In this document: positions 4,582 through 63,690 of the stretch, piece after piece
Layout: each line of letters starts with the position of its first letter
How positions within the stretch are numbered: the first letter of the stretch is position 1
NCBI RefSeq assembly: GCF_009834535.1
Contig: NC_045711.1
Location: 25,234,001-25,298,000 of the forward strand
Source: Camelus ferus
Taxonomy: Eukaryota
Direction of reading: 5' to 3'
Length of the DNA: 64,000 nucleotides
Program-made: the position numbers and the translations under genes
Notes under the pieces: model-generated
The model's input: the letters and a program-made list of their open reading frames with translations, nothing else
Told to the model about the DNA's origin: nothing
Databases searched by the model: none

Positions 4582-5723
4582 CTGTGTTGAGAGAGAGTGG
4601 TGGGGTCATTTCCTCTGCAGACAGGATCAACCTGGGAGCGCCCAGGTCCACGCCGACCACTATGTCCTGTCCACCTCATGAGCCCCGGTACTAAGTGATC
4701 AAGTTCATTGCATCCTTACTGAATGAGACACGAGCTCTCTTTCTATTCTCTGAATCAATTTGTATCAAATAGTTCTCTGTTCTTTAAAAATCTGCAAAAA
4801 TGTCACCTGTAAGCTCTCTGGCATGCGGTTTGTTTTCTGTTTCTTGGCAGGGTAGAGGAGGAGGAGTTTTGACTGCCTATTTACTTATTCCTGGGAGCAG
4901 GCCTCAGGCTAGGTCTTGTTCAAAGTAGAAAGAATCTGGGAAGCTTCTCACTTCTTTTTGGCAGCATCCCCTGCCCCATCCTCATCCTTGGCTGCCCTGC
5001 AAGTAATGGCTCTCACTGGCTGCCCACAAATCCTTGCTGTGATATTGATTGTGGTGGGGTATCTGTATTTCTGTTTTGCCTAAATATTCTTCAAACTCAT
5101 AAAATGTAAAATTAAAACAATATAAATGCCAGAGTCATAAATGTGTTAAAAATTGTGGAGACTTGGGCAGCAGGGGTGATGTTTCAGCAGAGGGAACCAC
5201 ACACTTGGTCATTCTGATTATGATACAGGGCTGGGGTCTGTTCTGGTCCCATGTAGGACTAGTCCTGCCTCAGGTCAATCAGAAGATCTTTTCAAGTGTT
5301 ACTTATGCAACAAATAAAAACTTGAACTTGTTTGAAAAATCCCACGTATCGGATGCCCTATTTCCTGAACAAATACAGAATATAGGGGATGAGACTGAGG
5401 TCAAACTGGCCATGCCCACAGCAGACCCTGAGCTGAGATCGATGCCTTCTATGGGCACCCACAAAGGGCAGGGCAGGTTCTAGGAGACCCAGCAGCTGCC
5501 ACAAGTGACACCTCCTAGGTGTTAACTGCTTAGGTTGAAATGAAATTGCGGGGCCCATAAGTAGGCACTCACATTACCAAGTGCTTCATGATTTATGAAC
5601 TCATATGATCTGCACTACAATCCTATCCCCACCTTAACTGATTGCTCAGCGTAGAAGAGGAGTGGAGCTTGGGTCTCCTGACTTCAGGCCAGGTGTTGGC
5701 TCCTTTTCACTCCTCCCACCCAC

Positions 5724-5860
5724 CTGGACAATGACAAACACAGCCTGGGTGAGAGGATGCAGGATCTTGATGGCTGACTGGCACTCAAAGAAACTGGAGT
5801 AGTAGCCGGTCTTGAAGACGTCCATGACGAGAGTGCAGATCCCAAACAGCACCAGCCCAC
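5724..5860 (-). CDS. OTOP2: Otopetrin-2, coding exon 2 (GGLVLFGICTLVMDVFK...AVFVIVQ)
   Basis: cattcccAG acceptor, CAG|GTGGGT donor, 137 nt; within ORF 5646..6065. Confidence 0.94.
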
Positions 5861-5920
5861 CTGGGAATGGGATGGGGGTGGTGGTCAGGGAGACAGAAGA
5901 GAAGGCTGATAGATTTGAGG

Positions 5921-6048
5921 ATGGATGGCTAAGTAGTTGTATAGTTGGGTGGATGGATGGATGAATGGGGTAGGTGCAAGGATGGTTGGATGGGTGGATG
6001 GATGGATGGAAGGATAGGTGTAAGACTGAGTCAGTGGATGCATGGATG
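5921..6048 (+). repeat. Degenerate (GGAT/TGGA)n microsatellite in OTOP2 intron
   Basis: Repeated ggatggat units. Confidence 0.85.
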
Positions 6049-6387
6049 TCCAATTGAGCCCCCATCTCTTTGGGGCTGCATAGATAAGCTTAGCCTGGAT
6101 AGGCTCTTTTCATTGCATCTATCATCTTTTTGCTCTCCATCAGAGTCTCTCCCGTGACCCCCTCTTTCAGTCTTTAGACAGGGCAAAGAAGTTCCACTCA
6201 TCCCTCTTGCAGGACTCTTTCTCTTCTCTCTCAACAGCTGCCCACCTCACCCTCAGACACATCTAGTCTTCCCTAGGGGAACATCTCACTGGTCTACGTC
6301 GAAGAGCACCCCATAGTTCCTCTGAGAGTCCCAGCCTCCAGCTCCGCGCCGAGCCCACCCCACTTCCGATCCCACCTCCCCTGGCAC

Positions 6388-10535: not shown

Positions 10536-11798
<1,263 letters not shown>

Positions 11799-16976: not shown

Positions 16977-17510
16977 TGTGACATAATAAGAACTATGTAA
17001 CTAGTCTCTGCNNNNNNNNNNNNNNNNNNNNNNNNNNNNNNNNNNNNNNNNNNNNNNNNNNNNNNNNNNNNNNNNNNNNNNNNNNNNNNNNNNNNNNNNN
17101 NNNNNNNNNNNNNNNNNNNNNNNNNNNNNNNNNNNNNNNNNNNNNNNNNNNNNNNNNNNNNNNNNNNNNNNNNNNNNNNCCCTCATCCTTTGGAGGGAAG
17201 GGAGAGGGGCTGGAGATTGAGTTAATAATTTATCATGCCGACATAATGAAGCCTCCATAAAAATCCCTAAACTATGGGGAGTCCGGCACAGAAGCTCCTG
17301 CCCTTAGGCCCCTCCTGGACCCTATGTGTCTCTTCACCTGGCGTTTCACGCATGTCCTTTACAATATGCATTATAAAAAAAAAAAAACGGTAAATGTAAG
17401 TAAAGTGCTTTCTGAGCTCTGGGAGCGGCTTTAGCAAATTACTGAACCTGAGGAGGCGGGTTGCGGGAAACCTCGTGTCTGTAACCAGATTGTCTCAAAC
17501 CTAAGCAGCC
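16977..17510 (+). mobile_element. MER21-like ERVL LTR, interrupted by gap
   Basis: tgtgacataataagaa start; gagaggggctggagattgagttaa and gtaaagtgctttctgagctctg...ctgaacctgaggagg match the recalled MER21 consensus. Confidence 0.8.
17012..17179. other. Assembly gap (168 N) within MER21-like LTR
   Basis: N run. Confidence 1.
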
Positions 17511-23439: not shown

Positions 23440-24860
23440 TAAAGCAAATGTTTTCATTAAAATAGAGTATACATCCAGAAAAATGTACACATCATAACAA
23501 GGTAGCAGGATGAATTTTTACAAACTGAACACAGTCAAGGATAATTAACATCCTATCAAGAAACAAAGTATTTACCAGCCTCCAGAAATCCCTTGTGTGC
23601 CCTGGTTACTACCCCTTAGGCGGTAACGGCCGCCCTAAGCCTGTTTTTGAACTTGTATGAACGGAATAAGATTGAGGCTGGGCTCTGCTGTGTTTGGTCT
23701 CTCTTGTTCAACATCAGGTATGGGCTGAATGGTACTCCACGGCATGTGTACACTACATTTTATTTATCATTCTCCTGCTGGGGTACATTTGAGTTGTCCC
23801 CAGTTTTTGCCTATTTTGGGTAACGTTGCTGTGAACGTTTGTGTATGTTTATTCATGTTTCTGTTGAGTACCTCAGGAAGCCATGTGTCCAGCTTTAGTG
23901 AAGCTCTTGCCATTTTAAAGGAAGACCTGCTTTGTTGTCTTGTTTTTCCTTATTCGACTTTATTGACGTCTAATGAACTATAATAAGACGCACCCATTTT
24001 GAGTGTGCAGGTCAGTTACTTTTGACAGATGTATGCACCTGTGTAAACACCACCACAATCAAGATACAGAGTATTTTCATCATCCCAGACGGTTTCCTCA
24101 TGTCCCTTTGCAATTAGTATCCCCCACCCACTCCTCCCCAGGCAAGGACTGACTTGATTTCTATCACTAGGTATTGGTTCTGCCCATTCTTGGACTTCTT
24201 ATAAATGGGATCATACAGTAAGTAATTGTATCTTCTTACCCTCCTCATAATTTCTGAGAGATTATACCTATCAGAGCATCCAGTGTTACTGGACCGTCTC
24301 CTCCTTGTTATGAGGTAGGCTGTCTGCATCCTAGTTGGTGTATCCATTCTCCTGTTGGTGGACATTTAGGCTGCCTCCGCTTTGGCTGTGATGAATGACG
24401 CTGCAACGATTGTCCAGGTTCACATCATCCTTCCTTTCTGGAGGGGGAAGGTAATTAGGTTTACCACTTGAGCTATACCCTCCCCCCAACATCTTAACAT
24501 GGTCACGTATTTCATTACTCCTGAGTGAATACCTGGGAGCTGAATCGCTGTGTCATAGGGTAAGTGCATATTTACCTCACAAGGAACTGCCGAACTGTTT
24601 TCCAAGGAGTTTGTACAACTTTTCACTCTTAGCAATGAAACAGAGGTCGGTTACTCCGCATCCCCTTGCCAACGCTCAGTGTTGCCTGGCTGTTTAATTT
24701 TAGCCATTCTCCAGGTCTGAAGGACTCTCTCATTGGGATTTTAATTTGCATTTTCCTGAAGACTAATGACGTGGAGCATCTTTTCATGTGTTTATTGGCC
24801 ATTTGTACCTTTCCTTTGGTGAACTGTTAGTTCAAGTCTATTCCCCCATCTCCCATTCCA
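23440..24860 (-). mobile_element. Ancient L1M (L1MB/MC/ME-type) fragments
   Basis: aaactgaacac, caccacaatcaagatacagagtattttcatc, gaatacctgggagctgaatcgctgtgtcatagggtaag, actaatgacgtggagcatcttttcatgtg motifs. Confidence 0.8.
24436..24487 (-). mobile_element. Internally deleted vic-1-like tRNA-derived SINE
   Basis: Minus strand GGGGGGAGGGTATAGCTCAAGTGGT joined directly to AAACCTAATTACCTTCCCC; box A present, box B absent. Confidence 0.65.
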
Positions 24861-25518
24861 CAGCCCCGCCCCTGCCACCTACACCCTCCGTACCCTCTTG
24901 TTTGAGTCTGTTCTTAATTGTCTGCCTCTCTCCAAGGAGGCTACCAGTCAGCCCCATCCCACGGGGATTCTTGGCTCTTCCAAGCTCCTCTAATACGTCT
25001 GCCTCTGCTCCTGTTTGACACAGCACATCTCCTTACAGCATCACTTAGATGTCCAGCAGGTTACCAAAGCCTGGAGAGGGGCTTCTTGGTACCAGGAAGT
25101 TCCCTAGTCTATATAATAAAACCAGTGGGATTCTGCCTTTATCAAATTGTAATGTTGCATATTAATATCGAATATGCTTTTAAAAATTGTAGATATCCCC
25201 TTCCTGAAAATGCTAGTATATTGGAGAGGGAGGAACTTGAAGGTGGGATAGGGAGGGGGAAGTGCAACTCCCCCTTCTCTGTCTTGGGAATCTCTGATAA
25301 AAACAAAAGATAATTGGATTTAGAGGAGACGTCCTGGATTAGAGTTCTACTTCTGCCATTTTGGCACTGTGGGGTGGGTGTGGGCAGATCAGTTCATCTC
25401 TCTGGGCCTCCATCAATTAAATGGGGATGGTGTCATCCTTGCAAGTTGTTGTGAGTTGTAGGGACTAGACAAGACCTGATGAGTATGTGGAAGTCAACAG
25501 TAAACTCTAAGGAGCCAG

Positions 25519-37932: not shown

Positions 37933-38150
37933 NNNNNNNNNNNNNNNNNNNNNNNNNNNNNNNNNNNNNNNNNNNNNNNNNNNNNNNNNNNNNNNNNNNN
38001 NNNNNNNNNNNNNNNNNNNNNNNNNNNNNNNNNNNNNNNNNNNNNNNNNNNNNNNNNNNNNNNNNNNNNNNNNNNNNNNNNNNNNNNNNNNNNNNNNNNN
38101 NNNNNNNNNNNNNNNNNNNNNNNNNNNNNNNNNNNNNNNNNNNNNNNNNN
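37933..38150. other. Assembly gap (218 N) adjoining an L1 fragment
   Basis: N run. Confidence 1.
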
Positions 38151-42508: not shown

Positions 42509-42815
42509 CAGGAATTTACAAACTTTTCCAGTCAAAGGCCAGAGAGTAAATATTTTGTAGATGATACAGTCTCTGTCACAACTACTCAACGGCACCATCA
42601 AAGTGCAAAACAGCCAGAGACAATATGTAAAGAAATGAGCATCATTGTTTTTCAATAAAATTTTTAAAATTTTATGTAATTTTCACATTACAGAATATTA
42701 TTCTTTACAGTGTTTAAAAACTTTTTAAGAATGTAATACACTATGAACTTGTGGGTTGTACAAAAACAGGTAGTGGGCAGGATTTGGCCTGCAAACTGTA
42801 GTTTGCCTAATCCTG
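42509..42815. mobile_element. MER58B-type hAT-Charlie element
   Basis: TIRs caggaatttacaaac / gtttgcctaatcctg; degenerate 8-bp TSD gtcttgtg / gtcgagtg. Confidence 0.85.
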
Positions 42816-43004
42816 GTCGAGTGGGACAAGCACAAAACACAGTGGCTTATTAGAAGTCAGAGCAGTATTTACTTCTCAGTACCAGGGAGGGGAAGTGACT
42901 AGAAGGGGCACAAGGAACTCCTGGGGGTGCTGGCCATGTTCTATTTATTGATCTGTGTGGTGATCACATGGTTACATCTTGTGATGATTCGTCAAACAGT
43001 ACTT

Positions 43005-43237
43005 TCTTTTCCTATTTACTTATTTACTTTTTTAAAAACACCTTTATTGTGGTATGATTCCTGTACAGTAAACTACACATATTTCAGATGTGCAATTTGA
43101 TGAATTTTGATAGATGTTTACACCAGTGAAACCACCACCACCACAATCAAGGTAGCAAATGGAGATACCAGGGATTGAACCCAGGACCTCATGCATGCTA
43201 AGCATGCACTCTACCACTAAGCTATACCCTCCCCCCA
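43005..43237 (-). mobile_element. Composite retroposon: tRNA-Ala(AGC)-like vic-1 SINE head plus ancient L1M 3' end, inserted in an L1ME-type fragment
   Basis: Box A TAGCTTAGTGG, box B GGTTCAATCC; perfect 13-bp TSD tcaaacagtactt at 42992-43004 and 43238-43250. Confidence 0.85.
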
Positions 43238-43282
43238 TCAAACAGTACTTATAATTTGTGTGCTTTTCTGTTTGTTACACTT

Positions 43283-43734
43283 TGTAAAGAAAAAAATGTT
43301 GCCTGCTATTCCAGTTCTACAAGGATCAAGCCATTAGTCACTGTAGTCACTCACCGACTGTTCCCTGAGGGGAATTCAGGATGGGGAAAAACAGAAAGCA
43401 TTCTGCAATGATTTGGATATACAGGCCCCTAGATAAGTTACATATTTAAGAGAAAAATGTCAATGATCCTAGATTCTTCCATCTTCCCATATATGGAAAA
43501 GCACTAAAATCATTAACTCGAGTTATCTGTTCTGTGTGATGAGCAGTAATCTTTTTATGCTTGACTTCATGTTTTTCCCAGCAAGAAAAAAAGTTTATAT
43601 ATATCTTGACTCCTCCCTTACCTCTTTGGAGCAGTTTCTCAGAATAATCCGAGAGCCTGTCTCCTGGGCTACAGTTCTAAGATCTCAGAATAAAACTTAA
43701 TTCACAACATTGTGCATTTTTCTTTCAGTTGACA
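43283..43734 (+). mobile_element. Solo ERV1-type LTR (452 bp)
   Basis: TG...CA termini (tgtaaag...cagttgaca), 4-bp TSD actt/actg with one mismatch, TATA-like tttatatata near 43594-43603, AATAAA 43689-43694. Confidence 0.75.
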
Positions 43735-43923: not shown

Positions 43924-44189
43924 CGGCGGAGGGAAGGTGGCTTCAGAATTATTGGGTTAGATGTGACCACAGATCCTGTCATTTAAAAGTCCATTTTGTT
44001 CATCATGGATTTTTTTTGGAGATCTAGCTTTGTCCTTAGTACGAAGGGCAAGCAGCTCCTCCTCTGTTCCCTCACCTACGTAAAGGGGAGGATGGTTAAG
44101 CAACAAGATCTTCAAGGTTTAAAATTCTCCCGGGCCTGACCTGGACAGCATCTTGCCGGGGCCAAATCTGTACAATGCTCGGCATCGGA

Positions 44190-44768
44190 GAAAGGGGTGG
44201 CCAAGGTCCTGGCGGGAGACTCTTTTTTGCAGACTTCCGGACTCCGTGATTATTACCCAATGGGCAGGGAGGCTCGCTTGGGCCTGGCTTGTGATTGGCT
44301 GGGACGCGGTGGGGAACGCCATCAAATCGGAAAGGGGCCTTGCGTCATCAGAGAGAGTCGAGAGCCTCCGAGAGGGAGCTGCTAAGTAAAGTAAGCTCCT
44401 TTTTAATTGGCTCCCTCTTTCAGGCGGCATTGAAACAGCAATGGGGATTTGCTCTCTTCCAACCCTAGGCTCCAGATAATCGGAGAGACGTTGAAGATTG
44501 GGGAGAAATTTATTGAGTCACGTACGGCCCGGAAGCCATGGGGGGCGGGTCTTCAGCAGAAGTGGGTGGGCCCGAGAGGGAGGGATTCTTTTGGGGCTGG
44601 GGGTGGAGTCGCTACTCAAGGCTTTCCCGGAGCGTGGGAGGCGGGATTTGGGGGCGGGCCCCCGATTGTGGGCGTGGTCGGAAGAAGGGCGGGGGCGGGG
44701 TCGGAGCGGGCGCGGAGCACGGGGTAGTCTCCGGGATAGGATCGGCTGGCCGGTTCCTGTTTCTAGGC
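44190..44768 (+). promoter_or_regulatory. FDXR promoter (CpG-rich, CCAAT boxes, CRE-like element, GC boxes)
   Basis: ATTGG at 44294 and 44406, TGCGTCA 44341-44347, GGGCGG at 44652, 44687 and 44693, directly upstream of the ATG. Confidence 0.7.
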
Positions 44769-44847
44769 ATGGCTCTGCGCTGCTGGCGCTGGTGGCACTG
44801 GTCAGCGTGGCCTCGGAGTCGGCCGCCTCCTTCTGGGAGCACCCCGA
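44769..44847 (+). CDS. FDXR: Ferredoxin (adrenodoxin) reductase exon 1, mitochondrial transit peptide ([20 protein letters not shown]...)
   Basis: aggcATGG start, GTAGGA donor at 44848, 79 nt; Arg/Trp-rich presequence without acidic residues. Confidence 0.93.
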
Positions 44848-45616
44848 GTAGGAGCAGGACACCTCTAGGTCTGGATAAGAGCGCGGGGACGCCTGCGAGC
44901 GCGAAGTGTAGGGGTCGAGGCCGAGCTGGGGCAGGGCTGGAGAGGGGAGAGGGAGGGACCAGGGTCGAGACTGGAGGGGCCCACTCATGCAGATAAGATA
45001 GGGGTGGTGTACAGGGGCAGATGGCGGCCCATGCGGTGAGATACGAGGCTCCTGGGGTGAGACAGGGGTCAACAAAGGTGAGAAAGGAAGACCGTGATGT
45101 CCACAGGTGTGAGGAGTGTATGGGGATGATACAGAGGCCTGTGGGGCAAGAGGGAAGTCTGGGGCCCAAAGGGGCAAAAACGGGCTTTGTGATGAGAGAG
45201 GGACTAGAAGAGGTAAAATGGGGCATTGTGGGGAGATCTACAGGGGTGAGACTGGGATGATCTGGAGTCTGTTGGAAGGATGTGGTATTCTAGCTGGGTA
45301 GGTAGGGAACCCAGTAAGAAAAATTAGAAAGTACTGTGTAGGGCAGCCTCAGGGGTGAAGGGAATTATTGAGTAAACTATCTTCAGTGGTACAGTAAGTT
45401 CACAGGTGAGATGGCAGCTCTGGATGGAGACAAAGCCTCTGGGGGTTCAGAAGAAGTAAGGGACCCTGCAGACACCAGAGCTTTGAGGAAGAAGGGAAGG
45501 AGGGTGCAGATGAGGTTGAAGCCTGGGAGGCTCATCTTCTGTTCCACACTGAAGTTGGTTTGGGACTGGGGAGGGAGCCTTGACCTGACTTTCCTTCCTG
45601 GTCCCCCCAACCGCAG

Positions 45617-45714
45617 GCTTCTGCCAGCAGTTCTCCACCCAGGAGCAGACCCCTCAGATCTGTGTGGTGGGCAGTGGCCCAGCGGGCTTCTACACAGCTC
45701 AACACCTGCTGAAG
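45617..45714 (+). CDS. FDXR: FDXR exon 2, FAD-binding motif [12 protein letters not shown]
   Basis: aaccgcAG acceptor, AAG|GTAAGC donor, 98 nt. Confidence 0.96.
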
Positions 45715-48700
45715 GTAAGCCACTTCCTCCTGCTTCCCTTTCCCATAATTCATCTGCTGCTCCAATCCTAAGATCAAGCCCCACTCTCTTTTGGTTTGAA
45801 AAACACTCCTGGATCCCTGATGGGGAAGGGGCTCCTGGCCTATCTAGATGGGACACTTCCTACCTGCTTTATCACCTACATCTGGGGCTCCCCACTCTAG
45901 GGTCTCAGCTGTGGGAGAAGTGTGTTTGCCTCATGGGTGATGGTCAGTGGTCCATGGCAGATGGTGGGCTATGCCTTCTTGACCAAGTACTCCACAGAGC
46001 TTATGTACACCGGCACGATGATTTTGTCCTGCCCCTCATCTTCCCTTCTTTCTCCTCTGTCTCCACTCTGTCTCCAACATTCTGCATCTTGCGGCTACCC
46101 TTCTTCTCAGGGCTTCTGTAACTTGAGGCACCTCGCCATCCTCTCCTCACCAGCTGCTCCAGCCCTTCCTGTGCCATGCTGGTCTTTCAGCTGGCCCCAC
46201 CTCCCTATTCCCCCCCACCCCACACTCATGGTCAGGGTCTCAAGGTTTATAGTGTTGGCCTTCGTGGGCAGGGCCCCAAGGCTGCTGGTTGCCCTTGAGA
46301 CTTCAGCAGATCTTGGTGGGAGGGAGGAGGGAGGGAAATCATGGGTTGGGGTGGGGGGAGGGTGCGGGAGACCTAGGATGACTAAGACATAGGACCGTGG
46401 CCTTGCTGAGGAGAGACAGGAGAAGGGATGAATATATTAATTATACACACACATATACAGATACTTCAAAGGTAGGGTGACCCACCTCACCAGTTTGCCC
46501 AGGACATGAGGCTTTCAGTGTTAAAACTGAGAGGGTCTTGGGGAGACTAGGAGGAGTTGGTCACCCTGCTGAAAAGTGACCTAAGCATGCCTTCCAAGCC
46601 ACCGAGGTGATAGAGCTGATTGCGGTGATGTGGTCAGCCTGAGCCTGGTTAGGTGGGGTTGGACAGAAAGTGTTTCCTGGAGAAGGTGTTTGAGTTGCAT
46701 GGAAGGAGGCTGGGCTCTGGAGAGGGCCTCCCCTGCATGGGGAGTCATCCTGGGGCAAATTTTCACGTGTTAGGTCAGCCCTGGGCTCTGGGATGGAGAC
46801 CAGGGATCTCATAGGGGCTGGAGAGGGCTTTCTGTAAGGGGCACTGTGGGAGCTGAGCCTGAATTGGGGGAGGGAGGAGACTGGGCCTTCCAGGCAGGAT
46901 TCTCAGTGCCCTCAGTGTGAACAGAGGCTCTAGCCTGCACTCAGCTGGCAAACACTTACACACTTTTCCTGTGGGAGGTGCTGGGGGATGGACCCAGAGA
47001 CCAATTACAAGGTGGTCCTTGCCCACTGGGAGCTCCAAGCTATTGTCTATGCTCCCGTGGCAGGAATGTAGGCAACACGTTTGGGACAGTGGCACTTAGC
47101 TTAGTCAGGCACTGTCTGGACAGCATCTCATCGCATCCTCAAGACAACTTGTGAAGCATGTGTCATGAGTGTTGCTTCACGGGTGAGGACACTGAGGCTG
47201 AGCAAGATTGCCCAAGGCCCCACCACTGAGCAGGGAAGGCGCTGCATTCTGAGCACGGGCAGTCCGACGACAGAGCCGGCTCATAAGCACCATGTGGGCC
47301 ATTCAGTAATCAATCACAGGACACTAGCACATTCCCAGGCACAGGCACTGCACTGGGAATGCGGGTGTGAGCAGGACAGATGTGGTCCCCATGCTTAAGG
47401 ACCTGACAGTCTAATGTAGGGAGGGGAAGAGGCTTTGCATGGAATTCTAGGGCTCTGATGTAGGGGCAGAGGGCATGTTCAGGAGTGGGCACATAACTCA
47501 GCCTGGAGGAGGTGATGTTCAGGTTGCTGTCTGAAGGACTGAAGGAGCTGTTGGATGGGGTGGGGGTGGGTGGGTAGGAGGCTAGAGGGCCCCAGGCACA
47601 GAGAACCGCAGGACAAAGACCTGGAGGAAAGAGAGAATGCGGGTCTGGGGACAGGTGAGTTCAGGGAGGTAGGCGTGTGCAGTGAGGATGGAGAGGTGAT
47701 TGCAGAGGCTGGAGGAGGTAGGTGGGCCCAGATCCTGGGGGCTTGGAAGTCACTGATCAGCTTGGATTCACGCAGTTTCTCTTGGTGCTGTCTGCCCTCC
47801 TCCCTCTATCCGAGCCCCCTGGGGGACTTGTTAAAACTCACATTTCTGGGCCTAGTTTATACCTAATCAGACTGTGGCTGAGGCCCAGGAATCAACATTT
47901 GTAAACAAGCCCCTGGAGAGGTCTGCTGCCTGTCACTCTAGGTGGCTAGCATCACCAAAGTGTTTTAGGCAGGGACTGAAGGCTCACCATATTTGATCTG
48001 GAGCTCTCTCTCTGCCTGCAGGGCAGACAGCAGGGCGGGGAGGCAGGGCCGTGGGCCGGGAGGGCAGTAGGGAGCTGCTGCGGTGGCAGTGGGGAGGGTG
48101 GCGGTCTGATTGGACAGAGTTGAGGGGAGTCAGGGAGGAGCCCCAGATTCTGGCTTGGGCTCTGGGTGGATGGGGTGGAAGGAAGCCCAGGAGCAGAAGG
48201 GGAGAGGTTTGGGGGAGGGGGTACTGGCTCTCATCTGGATGGACATCAGGTGTCTGGGGTGAGCTGTCCAGGGGTCTCAGGCTTGGTGACAGGTCTGGGC
48301 AGGAGAGAGAGAGTAGAATGCCATCAGTAAGTCCACGGGGAAGAACCTCAGAGAATATTTTTTTAGCGGGGTGGGGAGGGCAGAAGAAAAGGGGCCTGGA
48401 AAAGAGCAACCAGGGGGTTGGAGGGAACTGCGAGAGTTAGGGAGGAGAGGCTTCCTGGAAGAGGAAGCCAGCTGTGTGAGAACCAGTAAATAGGTCCAGC
48501 GGGTTTAACCTTATAGAAGTGGCCTTGGAGAGGGCCATGTGACCTGGTGGGAAGGGTCCATAGCAGGAAAGAGGGGAAGATAAGATGAGAATTGGACTGT
48601 GCATGGTACTGACCTCCAGGCTAAGCAGTTTAAACTTTGTCCCATGGCCGGGCAGCCAGGGAAGTTTTGTTAGGAAGGCTGAGTCATACAACACGACAGC

Positions 48701-49999
48701 AGCTGCAGTGGTGGTAATGGCAGCAGCGGTCAGGCCCTGGGGCTCAGTGTGCAGGCCTTGCTCATTTAATCTTGAGCATCACCCCAGAAGGAATGTGCTG
48801 TTGCCCAGAGAAGTTAAGAAATATTCCAGGGGCAGCACGGAATCAGATAGCAGAGGGCCTGGGCTGGCCCCCTCCGTGGTTGACTCCAAAGTTGCAGTTC
48901 TTCTGCGGGTATCATGTCAGTGGGGCTGGAGGGAGATGGTTCTGGCGCCACCTGCGGCTGGTCCGGGTAGGGAGAGTCAGGAGACACGATGCACGGGTGG
49001 GTGGGCAATGGGGGCCTGGACTTGGGTGCAGGCAGTGGAGTAGAAGGGAAGAAGGGATGTGGACGGAGGCAAAGAGGTAAGTGTGAGGCCTGCTAGATGG
49101 CAGGAGCTCATTTTCTTTGAGTCCATTGCATTGGGAGTATTGAATTGGGCAGGAGCCGAGATGGGGGTGTGAGGCAGGGCAGTGACATCCATAGGGGTCC
49201 CGACTGCTTGACTCTGAATCTGCTTGTGGCCCAGAGTCTCTCACCATCCTGACTTCCTGATGATTCACAGCCACCCCGAGAGTGTCCCAGTTTGCAGAGG
49301 AAGAGACTGAGCCCCAGCAGATCCTGGGACTTGCCAGGGCTATGTGGCTTTTTGGTAGCAGAGCCAGACCACACGTCTGCCCAGACCCATGCCTTCCCTA
49401 CGGCTCTTGTAGGTGCCCCGAGGAGCAGGCAGTGTGGGACTGACATGTGAGTGACATTGCTTTCTTCTAAGACAAAGAGTAAGGCCACTTCCATCTCCCT
49501 TTGCCTGCCTTATACTCCAGCTGTGTCCCCAACTCTCTGTCCTGCTGGTCCTCTTTCCAACAGAATGGTCTTGGAGACTAAAGCTAAGGCAGGTATGGAT
49601 TTCAGAAAGTGGTTCTCAGGGCATCAGATGGGCTGGGCAATTCTCAAAGTGTCCAGGAGTTCTAGTGCAGGGCAGTGTATCACGCCGGACCCAAGCAGTT
49701 GACGAAGCTCCCCTGATACAACTCCAGTGGAGGGCGAGCTGCCGCCTTCCTTCGCTGGCCGGGGTTCTCCCTGTCTCGCTGGGCTGGCAGTCCTTGCAGC
49801 CTGGCCTCGGCCATCCTGGCTCTGTGCTGCCAGTTCCTCTTGTCTGGCTCTCTAGGAAGACGGGGACTTTTCTCCTTGCAGAGGGTCCTTGTGTCCTCAG
49901 CCCACTGAACTGGGCTCTCCTGCTCTGTCCTGGGAAGGGCAGGACCCGTAGGGGCCCAGCCTCACCCTCAGCCCCACCAGCTGCCGCCCTCTCCCCCAG

Positions 50000-50095
50000 C
50001 ACCACCCCCGGGCCTGTGTGGACATCTTCGAGAAGCAGCTTGTGCCCTTTGGCCTGGTGCGCTTTGGTGTGGCGCCTGACCACCCGGAGGTGAAG
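50000..50095 (+). CDS. FDXR: FDXR exon 3 ([32 protein letters not shown])
   Basis: ctcccccAG acceptor, AAG|GTGGGT donor, 96 nt. Confidence 0.96.
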
Positions 50096-50294
50096 GTGGG
50101 TGTCTCTGGCCTCAGAGCAGGAGTTTGGAGGCTGCGGTCAAGGTGAGGAGGGAAGGGAGGCTCCCGGGCCGCACGGAATGACCCCAGGCCCTCTGCTGTG
50201 GATACCACCTAGGATTTTGGGGGGTGAGGGTGGCACAGCCATGGTCCCCGGAGCTGCCCCATCATCTAACCCCTCCCACTCTGGGGCCCGGCAG

Positions 50295-50417
50295 AATGTC
50301 ATCAACACTTTTACCCAGACGGCCCGCTCTGACCGCTGTGCCTTCCATGGCAACGTGGTGGTGGGCACGGATGTGACTGTGCCGGAGCTGCGGGAGGCCT
50401 ACCACGCCGTGGTGCTG
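50295..50417 (+). CDS. FDXR: FDXR exon 4 ([11 protein letters not shown]...AYHAVVL)
   Basis: cggcAG acceptor, GTGAGT donor, 123 nt. Confidence 0.95.
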
Positions 50418-50591
50418 GTGAGTGCAGCCGGGTGGGCGGGGCCACCGCCGTGGCGCGTGGCAGAGGGCTGGGAGACAGGGTGAGGGCCAGGGTGGAAGCT
50501 ATGGAGGAGGAGCTGGAAGGAGGCTGCTGGGAGCCTGGTGGGGTCTGCCTGGCCCCTTAACTGGTGCTGAGGCCTCTGGGTCTTTCCTCAG

Positions 50592-50705
50592 AGCTATGGG
50601 GCAGAGGACAACCAGGCCCTGGAAATCCCTGGTGAGGAGCTGCCTGGTGTATTCTCAGCCCGGGCTTTTGTGGGCTGGTACAACGGGCTTCCCGAGAACC
50701 GGGAG
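50592..50705 (+). CDS. FDXR: FDXR exon 5 ([15 protein letters not shown]...GLPENRE)
   Basis: tttcctcAG acceptor, GAG|GTGAGT donor, 114 nt. Confidence 0.95.
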
Positions 50706-51013
50706 GTGAGTTCAGGGAGCCCTCCCCCTGCCTTTTCCTCCCCACTTCTCAGCCAGGGCCAGTGGCAACTTTTGGATGCCATAGCTGGGGAAAGAGGGAG
50801 GCCTGGGAGGTTCCCAGTGAGAGGAGATTTGAAACATCGTGCCGAAAGAGGGGGAGGCCTCTGGAAAGAGGGGGCACTCGTAGAGGAAGAGGGCCCTTAG
50901 TTGCAGCTCAGGTAGCTGAAATTTCCCCCTGAGTGTTCACCCCATCTACTCAGAGCCCAAGTGTCGGGGAGCCTGAGGGCAGGGCTGGGGACCTGGCATG
51001 AGGCTGAGATTAG

Positions 51014-51175
<162 letters not shown>

Positions 51176-51779
51176 TAGGTCGGGGGCTGGAGGGGTGGAG
51201 CAGGGGTTACACTGAGGAGAGGGTGCCGCTGCCTGAAGGGTTCGGGCCTCGTCCCTCCATGCTGAACACAGTGCTTCTCTTTCCCCATGGTGCCAGGCAG
51301 AGGCCTTCTGAAAGGCAGCCCGTGAGCCTCGTCTCATACCATTTCTCCCTTCACTTTCTGCAGCTACATAGTTAACCTGTATTCATCTTTTAGTTCTTGA
51401 CTCAGTTGTGTCTTCCTACAGGATGCCTTCCAGGACCATCCTGAAGAGGTCCATTTCCCTGTAATACCTTCCTCCCATAGACTTGGCTACTCCTGTTTCA
51501 GAACAAACACACACACACCTACCACACACACACACACACCCCTACCTCTCCCTGCCCCTTGCACAGTGCCTGGCATGTGGTAAACAGTAAACACTTGTTG
51601 AAGAGCTGGGCCTGGTTTGCTGCGAGTTGGGGCCATTTGCAGAATTGGCAGCAGTGTTCTGTCTAGCCACCGGGGGGGGCAGTGGTGCAGTTTCGGGCCG
51701 CCCAGGGTAGGGTCACCAGCAAATGGAAAGGCCTCTTCCACCACCCTGATCCGACTTTAAGGACCTCCTTTTGTGTCAG

Positions 51780-51887
51780 AAAACGGACATCACGGAGGCT
51801 GCCCTGGGGGTACTGAGACAGAGTCAGGTGAAGACGGTGTGGATAGTGGGCCGACGTGGACCCCTGCAAGTGGCCTTCACTATTAAG
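51780..51887 (+). CDS. FDXR: FDXR exon 7 ([10 protein letters not shown]...[13 protein letters not shown])
   Basis: ttgtgtcAG acceptor, AAG|GTGCTG donor, 108 nt. Confidence 0.95.
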
Positions 51888-52131
51888 GTGCTGGGGCCTG
51901 AGGGAGAGGGTCCAGGGTCCCAAGTAGATGGTCTGCCCTTAGGAGGTGTGGCAGGGCAGAGCTGCCTGTGGTGGAAGAGAGGGAGCCAGGCAGGGCCCCC
52001 CAAGGTCCAGTGCCTTCTGTGGTGGTGGGTGGTACTGGTGTCTCCCACCTGGGCTGGGTTCTGGGGTGGGCTGAGGCTGGACAGTGCTCTGGGCCTGACC
52101 TCTTCCCCCACTCCCCACCCCCACCCCCAAG

Positions 52132-52216
52132 GAGCTCCGGGAGATGATTCAGTTACCAGGAACTCGGCCCATATTGGATCCTGCGGATTTCTTGGGCCTC
52201 CAGGACAGAATCAAGG
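52132..52216 (+). CDS. FDXR: FDXR exon 8 ([10 protein letters not shown]...LQDRIK)
   Basis: cccccAAG acceptor, GTGAGG donor, 85 nt. Confidence 0.94.
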
Positions 52217-52349
52217 GTGAGGGGCCCTGGCCTGGCCCCCCAGCTCACTAGAGAGGGGATGGTCTAGGTCAGAGAGGGCTTGGGGGAGGATGTTCGGGGA
52301 GAAGGCTGGAACCCAAAGATAGCCCTGAGATGTTCTGTGTTGCTGACAG

Positions 52350-52549
52350 AGGTTCCTCGCCCCAGGAAGCGGCTGACGGAATTGCTGCTTCGAACAGCCA
52401 CAGAGAAGCCAGGGGTGGAGGAGGCTGCCCGCCAGGCATCGGCCTCCCGTGCCTGGGGCCTCCGCTTTTTCCGAAGCCCGAAGCAGGTGCTGCCCTCGGC
52501 AGATGGGAGGCAGGTGGCAGGCGTCCGCCTGGCTGTCACCAGACTGGAG
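52350..52549 (+). CDS. FDXR: FDXR exon 9 ([13 protein letters not shown]...AVTRLE)
   Basis: gctgacAG acceptor, GAG|GTGAGT donor, 200 nt. Confidence 0.95.
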
Positions 52550-52632
52550 GTGAGTCTCCTGTTAGCCAAAGACACCCCCATTCTTAAGTGTTCCCACCCA
52601 CAGCCTGGTATTGCCCACACTGTCCCCAGCAG

Positions 52633-52804
52633 GGTGTCGGTGAGGCCACCCGGGCAGTGCCCACTGGAGATGTGGAGGACCTCCCTTGTGGGCTGGTGCT
52701 AAGCAGCATTGGGTATAAGAGCCGCCCCATCGACCCCAGTGTGCCCTTCGACCCCAAACTTGGCATCATCCCCAATGTGGATGGCCGGGTCATGAATGTG
52801 CCAG
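52633..52804 (+). CDS. FDXR: FDXR exon 10 ([12 protein letters not shown]...SSIGYKSRP...VMNVP)
   Basis: CAGCAG tandem acceptor, CAG|GTGAGA donor, 172 nt. Confidence 0.94.
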
Positions 52805-53384
52805 GTGAGAGGGTGCAGTGGGGGACAGGGAGGCTGGTGTCTCCTGGGGTCATTCCCATTCATTCATTCATCTGGTGACAGGTACTGAGAGCCAGGCCGT
52901 GTCCCAGGACCCCATCCTGGGACTTAGTTTAACTGAGATGCCCACACCTATGCCTGGTTATTAAGTCATTCAGTTTACTGAGGCCTGCTCTGAGCTAGGC
53001 CTAGTTCTGGGATTGGAGATTAGGCAGCAGCCCCTGTAATCGGCAAGCTTGCAGTCTGATTGTATATTCACATACCAGTCTAGTCATTAATTCATTCAGT
53101 TAATGTTTACTAAGAGCCTGCTGAAGCAAGGTGGGCAGGACTCAGCTCCTACAGGGAGGTCCTGGTCTACAGGGACACTGAGGGGTAAGGGGGGATGGCA
53201 TGGTAAAAACAGGTTGGGAAGAATTGAGAGCAGTGGGCCAGCAGCCACAGTGGGCCCACTGACAGATGCTGGAAGGCCGTGGGGTCAATGGATGCATGCA
53301 CATGCAAGTTTGTATGGGGGCTCAGGCTTGCCAAGGGTGTCCAGCCCACTCCCCATTACTTACACCTTTGTTACTCGCTCCCAG

Positions 53385-53555
53385 GCCTCTACTGCAGTGG
53401 CTGGGTGAAGCGGGGCCCCACAGGCGTCATCACTACCACCATGACCGACAGTTTCCTCACAAGCCAGATTCTACTGCAGGACCTGAAGGCCGGGCAGCTT
53501 CCGTCTGGTCCCAGGCCTGGCTATGCAGCCATCAAGGCCCTCCTCAGCAGCCGAG
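53385..53555 (+). CDS. FDXR: FDXR exon 11 ([16 protein letters not shown]...LLSSR)
   Basis: cgctcccAG acceptor, GAG|GTCTGG donor, 171 nt. Confidence 0.95.
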
Positions 53556-53695
53556 GTCTGGGCCCCATGTGAGCTCCAAAGAGGTGGGGTGGTGGTGGGG
53601 GCATCCCTGGACCTTCCCACTGTTTGGGAGTTGGGTGTTCGGGGCTAGAGTGGAGGAGGCGGTGGAGGCAGTGACTCGTTTTCCCTCTGCCTCAG

Positions 53696-53826
53696 GGGTC
53701 TGGCCTGTCTCTTTCTCGGACTGGGAGAAGCTGGATGCTGAAGAGGTGTCCCGGGGCCAGGGCACTGGGAAGCCCAGAGAGAAGCTGCTGGATCCTCAGG
53801 AGATGCTGCGGCTGCTGGGGCGCTGA
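53696..53826 (+). CDS. FDXR: FDXR exon 12 ([17 protein letters not shown]...MLRLLGR*)
   Basis: ctgcctcAG acceptor, TGA ends 53826; total 1479 nt = 492 aa. Confidence 0.96.
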
Positions 53827-54115
53827 GCCCAGATCAGGCATGGACAGGAGTCCTGTGCAGGGGAGAGGGACTGAGCCGGACTCCGCTCCACAGCTGCATC
53901 ATTTGCTGGTCCTGGCGTGGGGCCTTGGCTGCCTCTTTTCCAGGGGGTTCTGAGCACTTCCTCCTGCCAGAAGGTCACTCTTGCCAGTGTGGATTTGACT
54001 CTCAGAAAGGAGATAACCTTAGTTAGGGATGGGTGCCAGGTGCAGGCTGATCTTCCTCCCTCCTACCTCTCTCCTGCTGGACTGTGGAGGGTCACCAGGT
54101 TGGGAATAGGCTGGA

Positions 54116-54121
54116 AATAAA
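54116..54121 (+). terminator. FDXR polyadenylation signal AATAAA
   Basis: Canonical hexamer about 290 nt after the stop, followed by GT-rich sequence. Confidence 0.75.
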
Positions 54122-54829
54122 ACACCTGCAACCCAGGATCAGTGGTTGATGTGCGACTTCTTTGGGGGCCCCGGGTCACCTTCCAGCTGCAGCTCCCCTC
54201 CAGTCACCAGGTGGCGCTGCAGGGCCAGCTCCCTGCTCAGGGGCCTCTTGGGGGCTTGAGGGGTTTTGGCAGCCAGGCCTGGCACCCACCCTCTTTTCCT
54301 CAGCTTGTCCCTGCTGCTGCGGCCTGCGTGCCTTCTGCACACACTGCAGGCACCCTTTGACCCCAATCTGCTTGCTCTGCTGGCTCCACTGCCTGGTCCC
54401 CTCCCTGGTGAGTCCCCAGTACAACCAAAACAAGAACAGAAGAGAAAAAGTGGGAGTGAGGGAGCTAGGCAGCAGCTTGTCAGAGCTCCTCCCTGTGGCC
54501 CCTCTATCTGGTGAGGGTCCCCTACTCCGTGGCTTCCAACACCTTCCTGCTTTTTCAGTTTTCAGCCAGACCGACAAGCCTTTTAAAAATAGTACCTGAA
54601 TCTTCGTAGTGCTTTACAGTTTGCAAAGCGTGTTCACCGTCTTTGTGCTAGCCCCCAAGATGCTGGCCTCACTTTATAGACGGATGGATTCTCGAAATTA
54701 ACTGGCCCAAGGTCACACACCCAGTGAGCTTCGGGCTCGAACCCAGGGCTCCGGGCAGCCCGTTTTCTCCGAGGCTGCAGTTGGCCCCGTGTGTCGGGTC
54801 TGGGGACACAGCCCTAGAGACGGGAGGAG

Positions 54830-55750
54830 GGACCCAGGCGCCTGGCGCACTGGCGGGCAAGGAGGGGCCTGGAGCAGCGCGGGTGCTGGCGGCGGGGTGG
54901 GCCGGCCGAGGCGGGCCGGGGCGGGGCGGAGGCGGCAGGCCCCGGTGGGGCGGGCCCGCGCGGGCGGCGGCGAGCGCTTCGCCACAGCCGGCTGGCTGGC
55001 TGGCCCCGGGAGCCGGAGGCACGGCGTGCAGCGCAGCCCGGGACGGAGCCGGGCGCCTAGCGGGCCACGGGAGGGGCGCGGGGCGCGGGGCGCGGGGCGC
55101 GGGGGCGGGCCCGGCCCAGCCCGCCAGGCCGCGCCACGGGCACTGGCCCCGCGGCGCCCGGGCTCAGGCGCCCGCCGAGCTAGGACAGAGCGCGCCAGAG
55201 CGCGGAGCCGAGGCGGCGGGACATGCTCCGCGCGGGAGGCGGCCGGCGCGGGCTCTGGGCGCGGGCGCAGCGCCCCTTCCCCTCGGTGAGTGGCAGGCGG
55301 CGAGCCGGGGGCGTCAACTTGGCCAACTTGGGGCTGGGCTCAGGCGACGCGCGGGCAAGGACGACGGAGACAGAGGCGGGACACCGGGGAGAGTCTGGCT
55401 GGAGCAGGGAGCCCGAGGAGGGGGGCGGTCGGGGGACCGAGACTCTCGGGGTCCCTGCCTGGGGTTTGGACCGGGGCGGGCGGAGAGGAGGTGAGGAAGA
55501 GAGGCCCAGGTGACAGGCGCGCGGCGGACGCGAGGGAAGGACGCGGGCGAGGCGCCCAAGACATTCGTCTCCCGGGTCGCCGAGCCCTCCAGCTCCTTCT
55601 CCCGGCGCCGCGGCACCGCAGGGGAGGGGGCGGTGCGGGACGCGGGAGTCTGGGCTGCCGGCCCCGCAACTGTTGCTGCTGGAAGCCGGGCGGGGTGGGG
55701 AGGGAGCGGGGCTGTGAGCTGGGGCCCTGGCTGGGTTCGCCAGAGAGAAG
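54830..55750 (+). promoter_or_regulatory. GRIN2C: CpG island, upstream GRIN2C promoter with candidate non-coding exon ending at 55285
   Basis: Extreme CpG density, many GC boxes, donor TCG|GTGAGT at 55286; exon start not determinable. Confidence 0.6.
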
Positions 55751-56859
55751 GGAGCTGGAGAGGACATGGGGCAGAGAGGACGAAGAGGGGTTGTCGGTGG
55801 TTCCCGAAGCCCAGCCCCCTGCTCCCGGAGGTTTGCTGAGCACCTACTGCGCACATCTGCCTTCACACCCCTGCCCCTTCACCCGCCGTGAGTCCCCCCA
55901 GGTCCTCCCCTCCTAGCTCTTCCTTTTCTCCGCCGCCCCGCATAACGCTCCCTCCTCTGACCTCAGGGAATCAGCCTGGGCTCCACCCGTTGGTGGGATC
56001 TTACCAAACGCTGACCTCACTCCCAAGCGGACCCAGGCTCCGAGGATGGGAAAGGACGGGTGGGCAAAGAGGACCCGGGACAGCCGTGAGCCCCTGTGCT
56101 CTGGGCCCTGGCTGCCGCACCAGCGGGTTGCTCTGGTCTGCTGGGTCTTCCATCAGGATCCCCGACGGCGGGGAAGGGAAACCTCGAGTATCCTGCTGCG
56201 GAAGGCCGTTCGTGCCTAGGCCTAAGCGCGCAGGGCCAGGGCCATGAGAAGTCAAAGGCAGCCAGCAGCTAAAAAATCCCAAAGGGTGCATACCACGACA
56301 CATCCAGAAGTCCTGCTGGGTGAGTGAAGGGGGAATTCTCACTGGACCCTGAGCTCACTCCACTGGCCCTAGCCCTGCTCACCCGATGGGACTTCTGGCT
56401 CGGTCCCCAGCCCTCTGATGGTGACACTGCCCTGGCTGGGTCCTGACCCTGGCCATGGTGGAAACTGAGGAAAGGAACTTGGAGGGGACCAAGTAGGCTC
56501 TATTTCGGAGCCCGTCTAGTTTCTGGCTGTGCAAATAGGTTGGGAGCCTGCTTCAAATAGACTCCATACTAGAAACTCGAATAGCATCGTTAAAGGGATC
56601 GGGTAAGCCGGGAACCAAACTCCCGACTCCTGGGTTCGCCCTAGGGCAGGCCCGGGGTGGTACCTTCCCACAGCCCCGCCTGCCAGGCGAGCTCCGCAAC
56701 CCCTACCCGCGGGGCTTGAGGTGGCGACCAACTTGGGGCAGTGGGGAAGGGGACCTAGGAGCCAGAACGCTCGCAGCGGGTAGCCGCGAGGCGAGGGGCG
56801 CGGAGTGCGTGGTGCCCAGCTTGGCCGCCAGGAGGCGTGGCGCGGGTCCCGGCGCCCGG

Positions 56860-57023
56860 AGTCGCCGCTGCCGCCGCCGCCGCATCGCGAGTGTCCTTGA
56901 GCCGCGGGTGATGGTGGCTTTCGCCGCTCGCGCCCCCTCCTCCCTCGGGGGGAGCCTGATGCCACGTTCCCTATGAATTATTTATCGCTGGCCTAAAAAT
57001 ACCCCGAACTTCACAGCCCAAGT
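56860..57023 (+). other. GRIN2C: GRIN2C non-coding 5' UTR exon (5' end approximate)
   Basis: Resembles the human GRIN2C mRNA leader as I recall it (...ccgcatcgcgagtgtccttgagcc...cttcacagccc); donor AGT|GTAAGA at 57024 joins to gaccctccggtggacATG. Confidence 0.7.
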
Positions 57024-58378
57024 GTAAGAGATTCCCCCGGGGGGTCCGGGGCGGAATCAGCGGGGAGGGGGGAGTTAGTCTTGGAGGAGGGAGACCTCGG
57101 TGCCCGCGCCAGTAGGGGCGTGATGGAGAGGTGGTCGTCTCCCCTGACGCCTGGGTTCGGGTTTTAGCTCGGCAAAAGGGGGGGAGGGAAGCCCGACGGC
57201 AAAGCAGAGGCCGCTCACTCGGAGGGAAGTGGATCCAGAGGAGCCGCGGAGCCTGGGTCCCTCGGCTCCCCGGAGGTGGCGCGGCTGGTGGGTGGGGCCG
57301 ACTCTTGGGACCGAGGCTCCTGGCCTGGGAGAGAGGATATCCGTCAGATGTCTGGAGTGTGAGTCTGTGTGCATGTCCGTGTGTGGGAGCCTGCCTGAGA
57401 TTGGGGGAGCACATGGAGATGCTCAGGCGGTTCAAAGTGATGCTGAGTGTTCCGGAAGACTGACCACTGTTACCCTTCCCCTGGACCCTTTTTGGGGTCC
57501 GGATATTCATCAAATATTAACAACCCGTTTGTGAAAGGGGTGGACCCCAAGTGGGTGGGCAGAGATCTCTAGAGACAATAGTCCAGTGTGGGTCGGGGGC
57601 ATCTTGGGCTGGCAAATACCTGCCACGGGGCAAAATGAGGGAAACCGTGGCAGAGGAGCTCCCCAACCCAGGAGAAGTGGGGGTGTGGGGTGGGGGGAAG
57701 AAGGGCAACCAGCCTAGAGCCAGACCCAGACCTTCTGTCTTGTCACCCGTGTTTCCAGAGCCTGGAAGGACTAAGGTAGGTGCTCTGTGGGAGGAGGACT
57801 GAGGTTGGGCTCTGGAAATTCTGGAATTTGTTGGGTAGACAAGACAGAGGTGGTGGGAAGAGGGCATTCTAGCCTGAGGGAACAGCAGAGCAAAAGCCTA
57901 GAGGCGAGGACAGTAGGGTCATCCCTAGGTGGCAGGAGTGTGGGGTCCAGGGAGGGGAGGACAGTTGGTTGGGATCAGGGTGTGTGGGGCTCTGTCCATG
58001 AGACCCAATGTCTGGACTTAATTTGTGGGCACCAGGGAGCAGCTGTGCTGTTCGAGGAGGGGTGCAGTGGCCAGACGAATGTTTCAGGCCAGTGGGGCCT
58101 CCCCTCCTGCCTTGTGCAGGAGGCTGGACACCATGTGGTGCTAAGATTCTGGAGTCTACATCTCTTTGAATCTGCCCGTTGCTATTTTAAATTCACAGAC
58201 TTGCCTGATTGGGACCCCTCCCTTCAGAGGCATCCTGTGATCAGTTTCTGTGAGAGGCAAGACCTGCCTCAACTTTCCTCCTCAACTCCTGTCCTGGAGG
58301 ACACCTTCCAATCAGAGGGAGTCTCTGGGGACAGCACCCCCTTGGAGCTGAGGGAGGACCTGGGTTCTTCATCTAGAG

Positions 58379-63558: not shown

Positions 63559-63690
63559 NNNNNNNNNNNNNNNNNNNNNNNNNNNNNNNNNNNNNNNNNN
63601 NNNNNNNNNNNNNNNNNNNNNNNNNNNNNNNNNNNNNNNNNNNNNNNNNNNNNNNNNNNNNNNNNNNNNNNNNNNNNNNNNNNNNNNNNN
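63559..63690. other. Assembly gap (132 N) in GRIN2C intron
   Basis: N run. Confidence 1.

Follow-up and report, generated by a model that had tools for sequence, protein, structure and literature searches.

In a 64-kb stretch of DNA from the camel Camelus ferus (hereafter the window), we characterized a composite retroposon in which a tRNA-Ala-like SINE head and an L1M-type 3' end were inserted together, as one unit, by L1-mediated TPRT, a conclusion that is well supported. The composite has the testable properties of an L1-mediated chimeric retrocopy, a known class, and its host is a camelid. The origin that we favor, with a probability of roughly 0.45, is a one-off event in which the RNA of a SINE head was joined to a poly(A) RNA carrying the L1M-type 3' end; the resulting chimera is probably single-copy or low-copy.

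Results

A Single Target-Site Duplication Encloses Both Parts

The insert is bracketed by a perfect 13-bp target-site duplication (TSD), TCAAACAGTACTT, whose two copies match exactly (Table 1). The 13-mer occurs exactly twice within the 64-kb window, and two matches were seen in 0 of 100 shuffles. The span between the copies is 233 bp (43005–43237) and reads on the minus strand. When re-read and recomputed, the positions given in the original prediction for the TSD, the 233-bp block, the AATAAA, and the TTTTT were all correct, and a scan for T-runs agreed that TTTTT is the first run of at least four T downstream of the head.

Table 1. Features of the composite insert and its target site (positions in the window)
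Feature	Positions	Strand	Basis
TSD copy adjoining the A-rich tail	42992–43004	.	exact 13-mer, one of two in the window
Decayed A-rich tail, 29 nt, 69% A, GTAAATA-type pattern	43005–43033	-	direct reading and composition
TTTTT, first T4+ run past the head; possible Pol III terminator or native L1 3' UTR end	43034–43038	-	
GGTG spacer between AATAAA and TTTTT	43039–43042	-	
AATAAA polyadenylation hexamer	43043–43048	-	aligned to its counterpart in the L1M 3' end near 23960
Body, about 111–120 nt, homologous to the final ~115 nt of an L1M-type 3' end	43049–43159	-	alignment to 23958–24075 (minus strand), translation
tRNA-Ala(AGC)-like SINE head, ending at the discriminator A of ...CTCCA	43160–43231	-	ARAGORN, Rfam tRNA, direct reading
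SINE family 5' leader TGGGGG, 6 nt, G-rich	43232–43237	-	also opens the truncated copy, at 24488
TSD copy adjoining the 5' leader; plus strand continues with ATAATT	43238–43250	.	exact 13-mer

The same prediction held that the block arrived as one insertion, and this stands: the duplication is perfect, an A-rich tail lies by the 3' TSD copy, and the nick site, ...ACTT/AT, is L1-like. Read on the plus strand as ...ACTT/ATAATT, the site is an acceptable variant of the L1 endonuclease consensus TTTT/AA and near its preference. Because the sole TSD brackets both parts and the sole tail follows the L1 part, the insertion was of a single unit. We considered and rejected the insertion of a SINE beside a pre-existing L1 piece, as the head has neither a TSD nor an A-tail of its own and the TSD surrounds both parts. 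A later L1 insertion into the A-tail of a SINE was likewise rejected; in that case an A-rich TSD would separate the parts, and instead ...CTCCA is followed by TTTGCTACC. The filled site was recovered from two organisms of the run index, with 0.94–0.96 of the sampled words present, and the insertion is thus common to at least two taxa.

The Head Is Complete and Ends at the tRNA-Like 3' Terminus

The head was the sole tRNA-like call of ARAGORN in the 64-kb window, as tRNA-Ala(agc), and it matched the Rfam tRNA model over its full length with 50.7 bits (gathering score 29). By direct reading, box A (TAGCTTAGTGG, at about 43224–43214) and box B (GGTTCAATCCC, at about 43181–43171) are both intact and lie 32 nt apart. 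The SINE head is full length and in sense orientation, extending from the family 5' leader to the discriminator base, and L1M homology begins within 1–2 nt after it. Together with the alignment of the body described below, the ARAGORN and Rfam matches bear out the claim that a SINE head is fused to an L1M-type 3' end. Past ...CTCCA the sequence runs directly into TTTGCTACC, and an A-run between the head and the L1 part is absent.

The camel tRNA-Ala SINE vic-1 is a simple SINE made of a head and a tail, with no body (SINEBase, PMC3531059). We infer that the head is that of vic-1. In a vic-1 simple SINE the head would pass directly into an A-rich tail, whereas here an L1M 3' end of about 120 nt intervenes.

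The SINE family of the head is represented once more at about 24440–24488 on the minus strand, inside the L1M at about 23950–25000. This copy consists of a 27-nt 5' end, TGGGGGGAGGGTATAGCTCAAGTGG..., a short 3' end, ...CCCCCTCCA, and a purine-rich tail that begins directly after ...CTCCA. It is an internally deleted SINE copy of about 65 nt that was inserted into decayed ORF2 sequence of the L1M and may have a short TSD of the GATGT type. The copy carries no L1 part and is the only other trace of the head in the 64-kb window.

The Body Resembles the 3' End of an Old L1

The body is colinear with the 3' end of the decayed L1M at 23958–24075 on the minus strand (66% identity over 113 nt, E = 7.5e-9), the alignment extending from the CTTGATTGTGGTGG motif to a shared AATAAAG. 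The L1M at 24 kb continues upstream into remnants of ORF2 with many stops and an HMKRCSTS motif at 24790, and the translation of the body (...YLDCGGG...QNSSNCT...IIPQ) follows the frame of the L1M tail in that copy. We take the body to be an L1MB–ME kind of 3' end and assume that the body and the 24-kb copy have each diverged by roughly 20% from consensus. As judged from this resemblance, the L1 piece is likely to come from an ancient L1 lineage. No young L1 was seen in the GC-rich 64-kb window.

Searches for relatives of the insert found neither the junction nor the body a second time, and no paralogue of the flanking host repeat, putatively L1ME-type, within the 64-kb window. At the protein level, the 41-codon open frame within the body brought up no candidates, an exact look-up of the 57-aa ORF spanning the tail and flank gave no record, and a full-text literature search for strings from the body gave no match. 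The 21-mer covering the junction (43145–43165) had one match each in the metagenome and genome contig collections and none in viral contigs, all of them collections without camel DNA. The matches fall in AT-rich bacterial coding DNA, in a JGI metagenome contig (L001, 5276–5296) and in Halanaerobium saccharolyticum (L002, 3816–3836). We rejected them as relatives of the insert, such matches being chance hits in AT-rich coding DNA.

Discussion

Origin of the Composite

Three properties expected of a chimeric retrocopy are present in the insert: a single TSD surrounds both parts, a poly(A) tail is accompanied by an L1-type nick, and the 5' partner is full length, in sense orientation, and reaches its natural 3' end. 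In the scenario that we favor, reverse transcription would have been primed at the poly(A) tail of a transcript whose final ~125 nt were an L1M-type 3' end, AATAAA included. This transcript would most likely have been a product of Pol II from the cell that had used the polyadenylation signal of an old L1M copy, and less likely the mRNA of an active camelid L1. The cDNA would then have continued onto the RNA of a complete tRNA-Ala SINE head whose 3' end was the tRNA-like terminus, this head RNA being either a tRNA-like processed molecule or a short primary transcript. The two RNAs could have been joined by a template-switching reverse transcriptase during TPRT or by an earlier ligation.

The feature that best separates this scenario from its competitors is the junction, and it favors the chimera: a join exactly at the tRNA-like 3' end is as expected if the head RNA had been processed and the jump or ligation took place at its physical 3' end. 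The apparent age of the L1 partner argues the other way, as the partner in human Alu/L1 chimeras is usually a concurrently active L1 and pairs of an old L1 and a young SINE are rare. Should the body indeed derive from an old L1M, a cellular transcript polyadenylated at an old L1 signal would have served as 3' partner, and the presumed resemblance to L1MB–ME elements makes the joining of a SINE RNA to such an RNA a rarer event. In addition, the arrangement of AATAAA, 4 nt, T5, and A(n), together with a body free of T4, also matches the needs of the origin put forward in the original prediction, a SINE 3' transduction. According to that account, Pol III transcription started from a tailless head, ran through ~120 nt of dead L1M, and stopped at TTTTT, after which the RNA was polyadenylated through the AAUAAA of the L1M and retrotransposed by L1. 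In its favor, both promoter boxes are preserved and the first bases of the insert are those of the family 5' leader; a run of T4 or longer is absent before the T5 that adjoins the tail, with the AATAAA 4 nt upstream. A UGUA about 20 nt before the AATAAA resembles the tau signal of B2, and experiments on T+ families have demonstrated that Pol III SINE transcripts are polyadenylated in an AAUAAA-dependent manner (PMC8466645). On closer inspection these cues are not specific. Absence of T4 is not significant (P = 0.32, 32% of shuffles of the body composition lacking it too), the other L1M 3' end in the window is also without T4, and an AATAAA before the tail is what a native L1 3' end has. T+ polyadenylation needs beta and tau signals besides AATAAA (PMC8466645), and a CATG(G/T) beta-like signal is absent downstream of box B. 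As a vic-1-type copy consists of a head and an A-tail, read-through from a normal copy would carry an A-tail into the middle of the insert, where there is none; a source with the head abutting the L1M exactly at the discriminator base additionally requires that an insertion was tailless or that a deletion was precise, and either would be rare. The T5 and PAS layout favors read-through and the priors favor the established chimera mechanism. Template switching or RNA ligation fits slightly better, and we regard Pol III read-through as unlikely. On the chimera reading, the AATAAA–T5–A(n) layout would have come with the L1 3' end and would be no evidence of Pol III termination.

The insert might also be an ordinary member of a multicopy camelid SINE subfamily, whether or not Dfam/Repbase lists it, whose consensus consists of the head and an L1-derived 3' module, with either of the above origins having taken place in one master copy. 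The composite structure is fully intact and holds promoter boxes, PAS, terminator, and tail, all the parts of a Pol III-driven, L1-mobilized element, and the birth of SINEs from chimeras of tRNA and LINE 3' ends is documented for RTE-type LINEs. Three weak points stand against this: the listing of vic-1 in SINEBase as a simple SINE without a body, the lack of a further junction or body in the 64 kb, where the other head trace has no L1 part, and the lack of a literature match to the body strings in the full-text search. We consider membership of such a family somewhat unlikely. The bolder version, in which the composite is a member or founder of an undescribed camelid SINE subfamily whose head gained a PAS and a Pol III terminator from a dead L1M in one step, in the style of a T- to T+ transition, is doubtful. 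Finally, the AATAAA and tail would fit the 3' processing of a Pol II transcript, an mRNA 3' UTR or lncRNA in which a SINE head adjoined an L1M 3' end, of which the insert could be a 5'-truncated processed retrocopy. As this account needs truncation to fall within 1 nt of the first base of the SINE, the chance of which is well under 1%, as well as the unusual tailless adjacency of head and L1M in the source, we find it highly improbable.

Comparison with Known Chimeras, SINEs, and Transductions

The composite resembles the Alu/LINE-1, U6/LINE-1, and tRNA/LINE-1 chimeras (Buzdin-type chimeric retrogenes) in its full-length sense Pol III RNA 5' of a truncated L1 3' end, its poly(A), its one TSD, and its L1-endonuclease-like site. 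In human, 113 Alu/L1 loci, mostly with full-length sense Alu, and 21 tRNA/L1 loci with TSDs of 9–19 bp are known, and the L1 partner is normally a contemporaneous active L1 (Law & Burns 2025, bioRxiv 10.1101/2025.02.02.635956). Ligation as a route to joining has a precedent in RtcB, which ligates U6 either to L1 RNA or to other RNAs of the cell (Moldovan et al. 2019, PMC6789731). Unlike the human chimeras, the composite has a camelid host, its 5' partner is a tRNA-Ala simple SINE, its L1 part is very short (~125 nt) and apparently from an ancient L1M, and the A-tail of the SINE is not kept at the junction.

With the T+ SINEs (such as B2, Dip, Ves, Can, and C; Vassetzky et al. 2021, PMC8466645), the insert shares a tRNA-derived head with A and B boxes, an AATAAA, a T4+ terminator, an A-tail, and a UGUA upstream of the PAS. 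The T+ order of AATAAA, T4+, and A-tail is present at 43048–43005, although a plain L1 3' end gives the same layout. Where the T+ SINEs have a family-specific body, the insert carries a recycled L1 end as its 3' module. The insert also differs in having just one PAS and no beta-type signal after box B, in being known from a single copy, and in that its polyadenylation is putative. The composite is like vic-1 in its tRNA-Ala-derived head, its camelid genome, and its mobilization by L1 (Lin et al. 2001; SINEBase, PMC3531059), and it differs from the head and tail of that element in that about 120 nt of L1M 3' end replace the start of the tail.

If the insert did arise by read-through, it would be like the 3' transductions of L1 and SVA in that flanking genomic sequence was carried to a new site. 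In those transductions, Pol II transcription overruns the end of the element as far as a poly(A) signal further downstream and takes the flank along, and the tail or PAS of the element is kept in the middle. This hallmark, the element's own tail between element and flank, is missing from the insert, and the promoter would be that of Pol III.

As a one-off, the composite is a further example, here in a camelid, of RNA-level recombination by the L1 machinery, and a clean case of a SINE part that ends exactly at the tRNA-like 3' terminus, hinting that the head RNA was processed like a tRNA before joining. Should sibling copies exist, they would show a tail-dependent simple SINE acquiring a terminator and PAS module from LINE debris, and would bear on the origin of T+ SINEs and of LINE-tailed SINEs.

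Surroundings of the Insert

Six RNA-seq runs, reproductive-tract libraries among them, contain 40–94% of the sampled words of the 861-bp stretch 42700–43560, flanks included. This coverage of both insert and flanks indicates a longer transcript or DNA carry-over and gives no evidence for a Pol III unit. The insert sits in an AT-rich repeat island, with a GC content of 0.40 at 42–44 kb. From 44000 to 58000 there is a long, strongly positive GC skew (0.08–0.22), with a CpG-island-like peak of GC 0.69 at 54–56 kb; the skew suggests plus-strand transcription units just downstream of the AT-rich island. Pfam domains were not found in the long ORFs of 44000–58000. Runs of N, either gaps or deliberate masking, occupy 10742–10881, 11214–11385, 17012–17179, 37933–38150, and 63559–63690, two of them inside long ORFs at 10.5–11.8 kb. 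The search for a neighbor of the insert recognized one gene only, an otopetrin gene at 1.8–6 kb with minus-strand exons at 1841–2917 and 5649–6065; its large last exon matches Pfam PF03189 (1.2e-21), and a weak N-terminal match lies at 5.6–6.1 kb. In part from these exons, we take the window to lie in the OTOP3/OTOP2/USH1G/FADS6 neighborhood.
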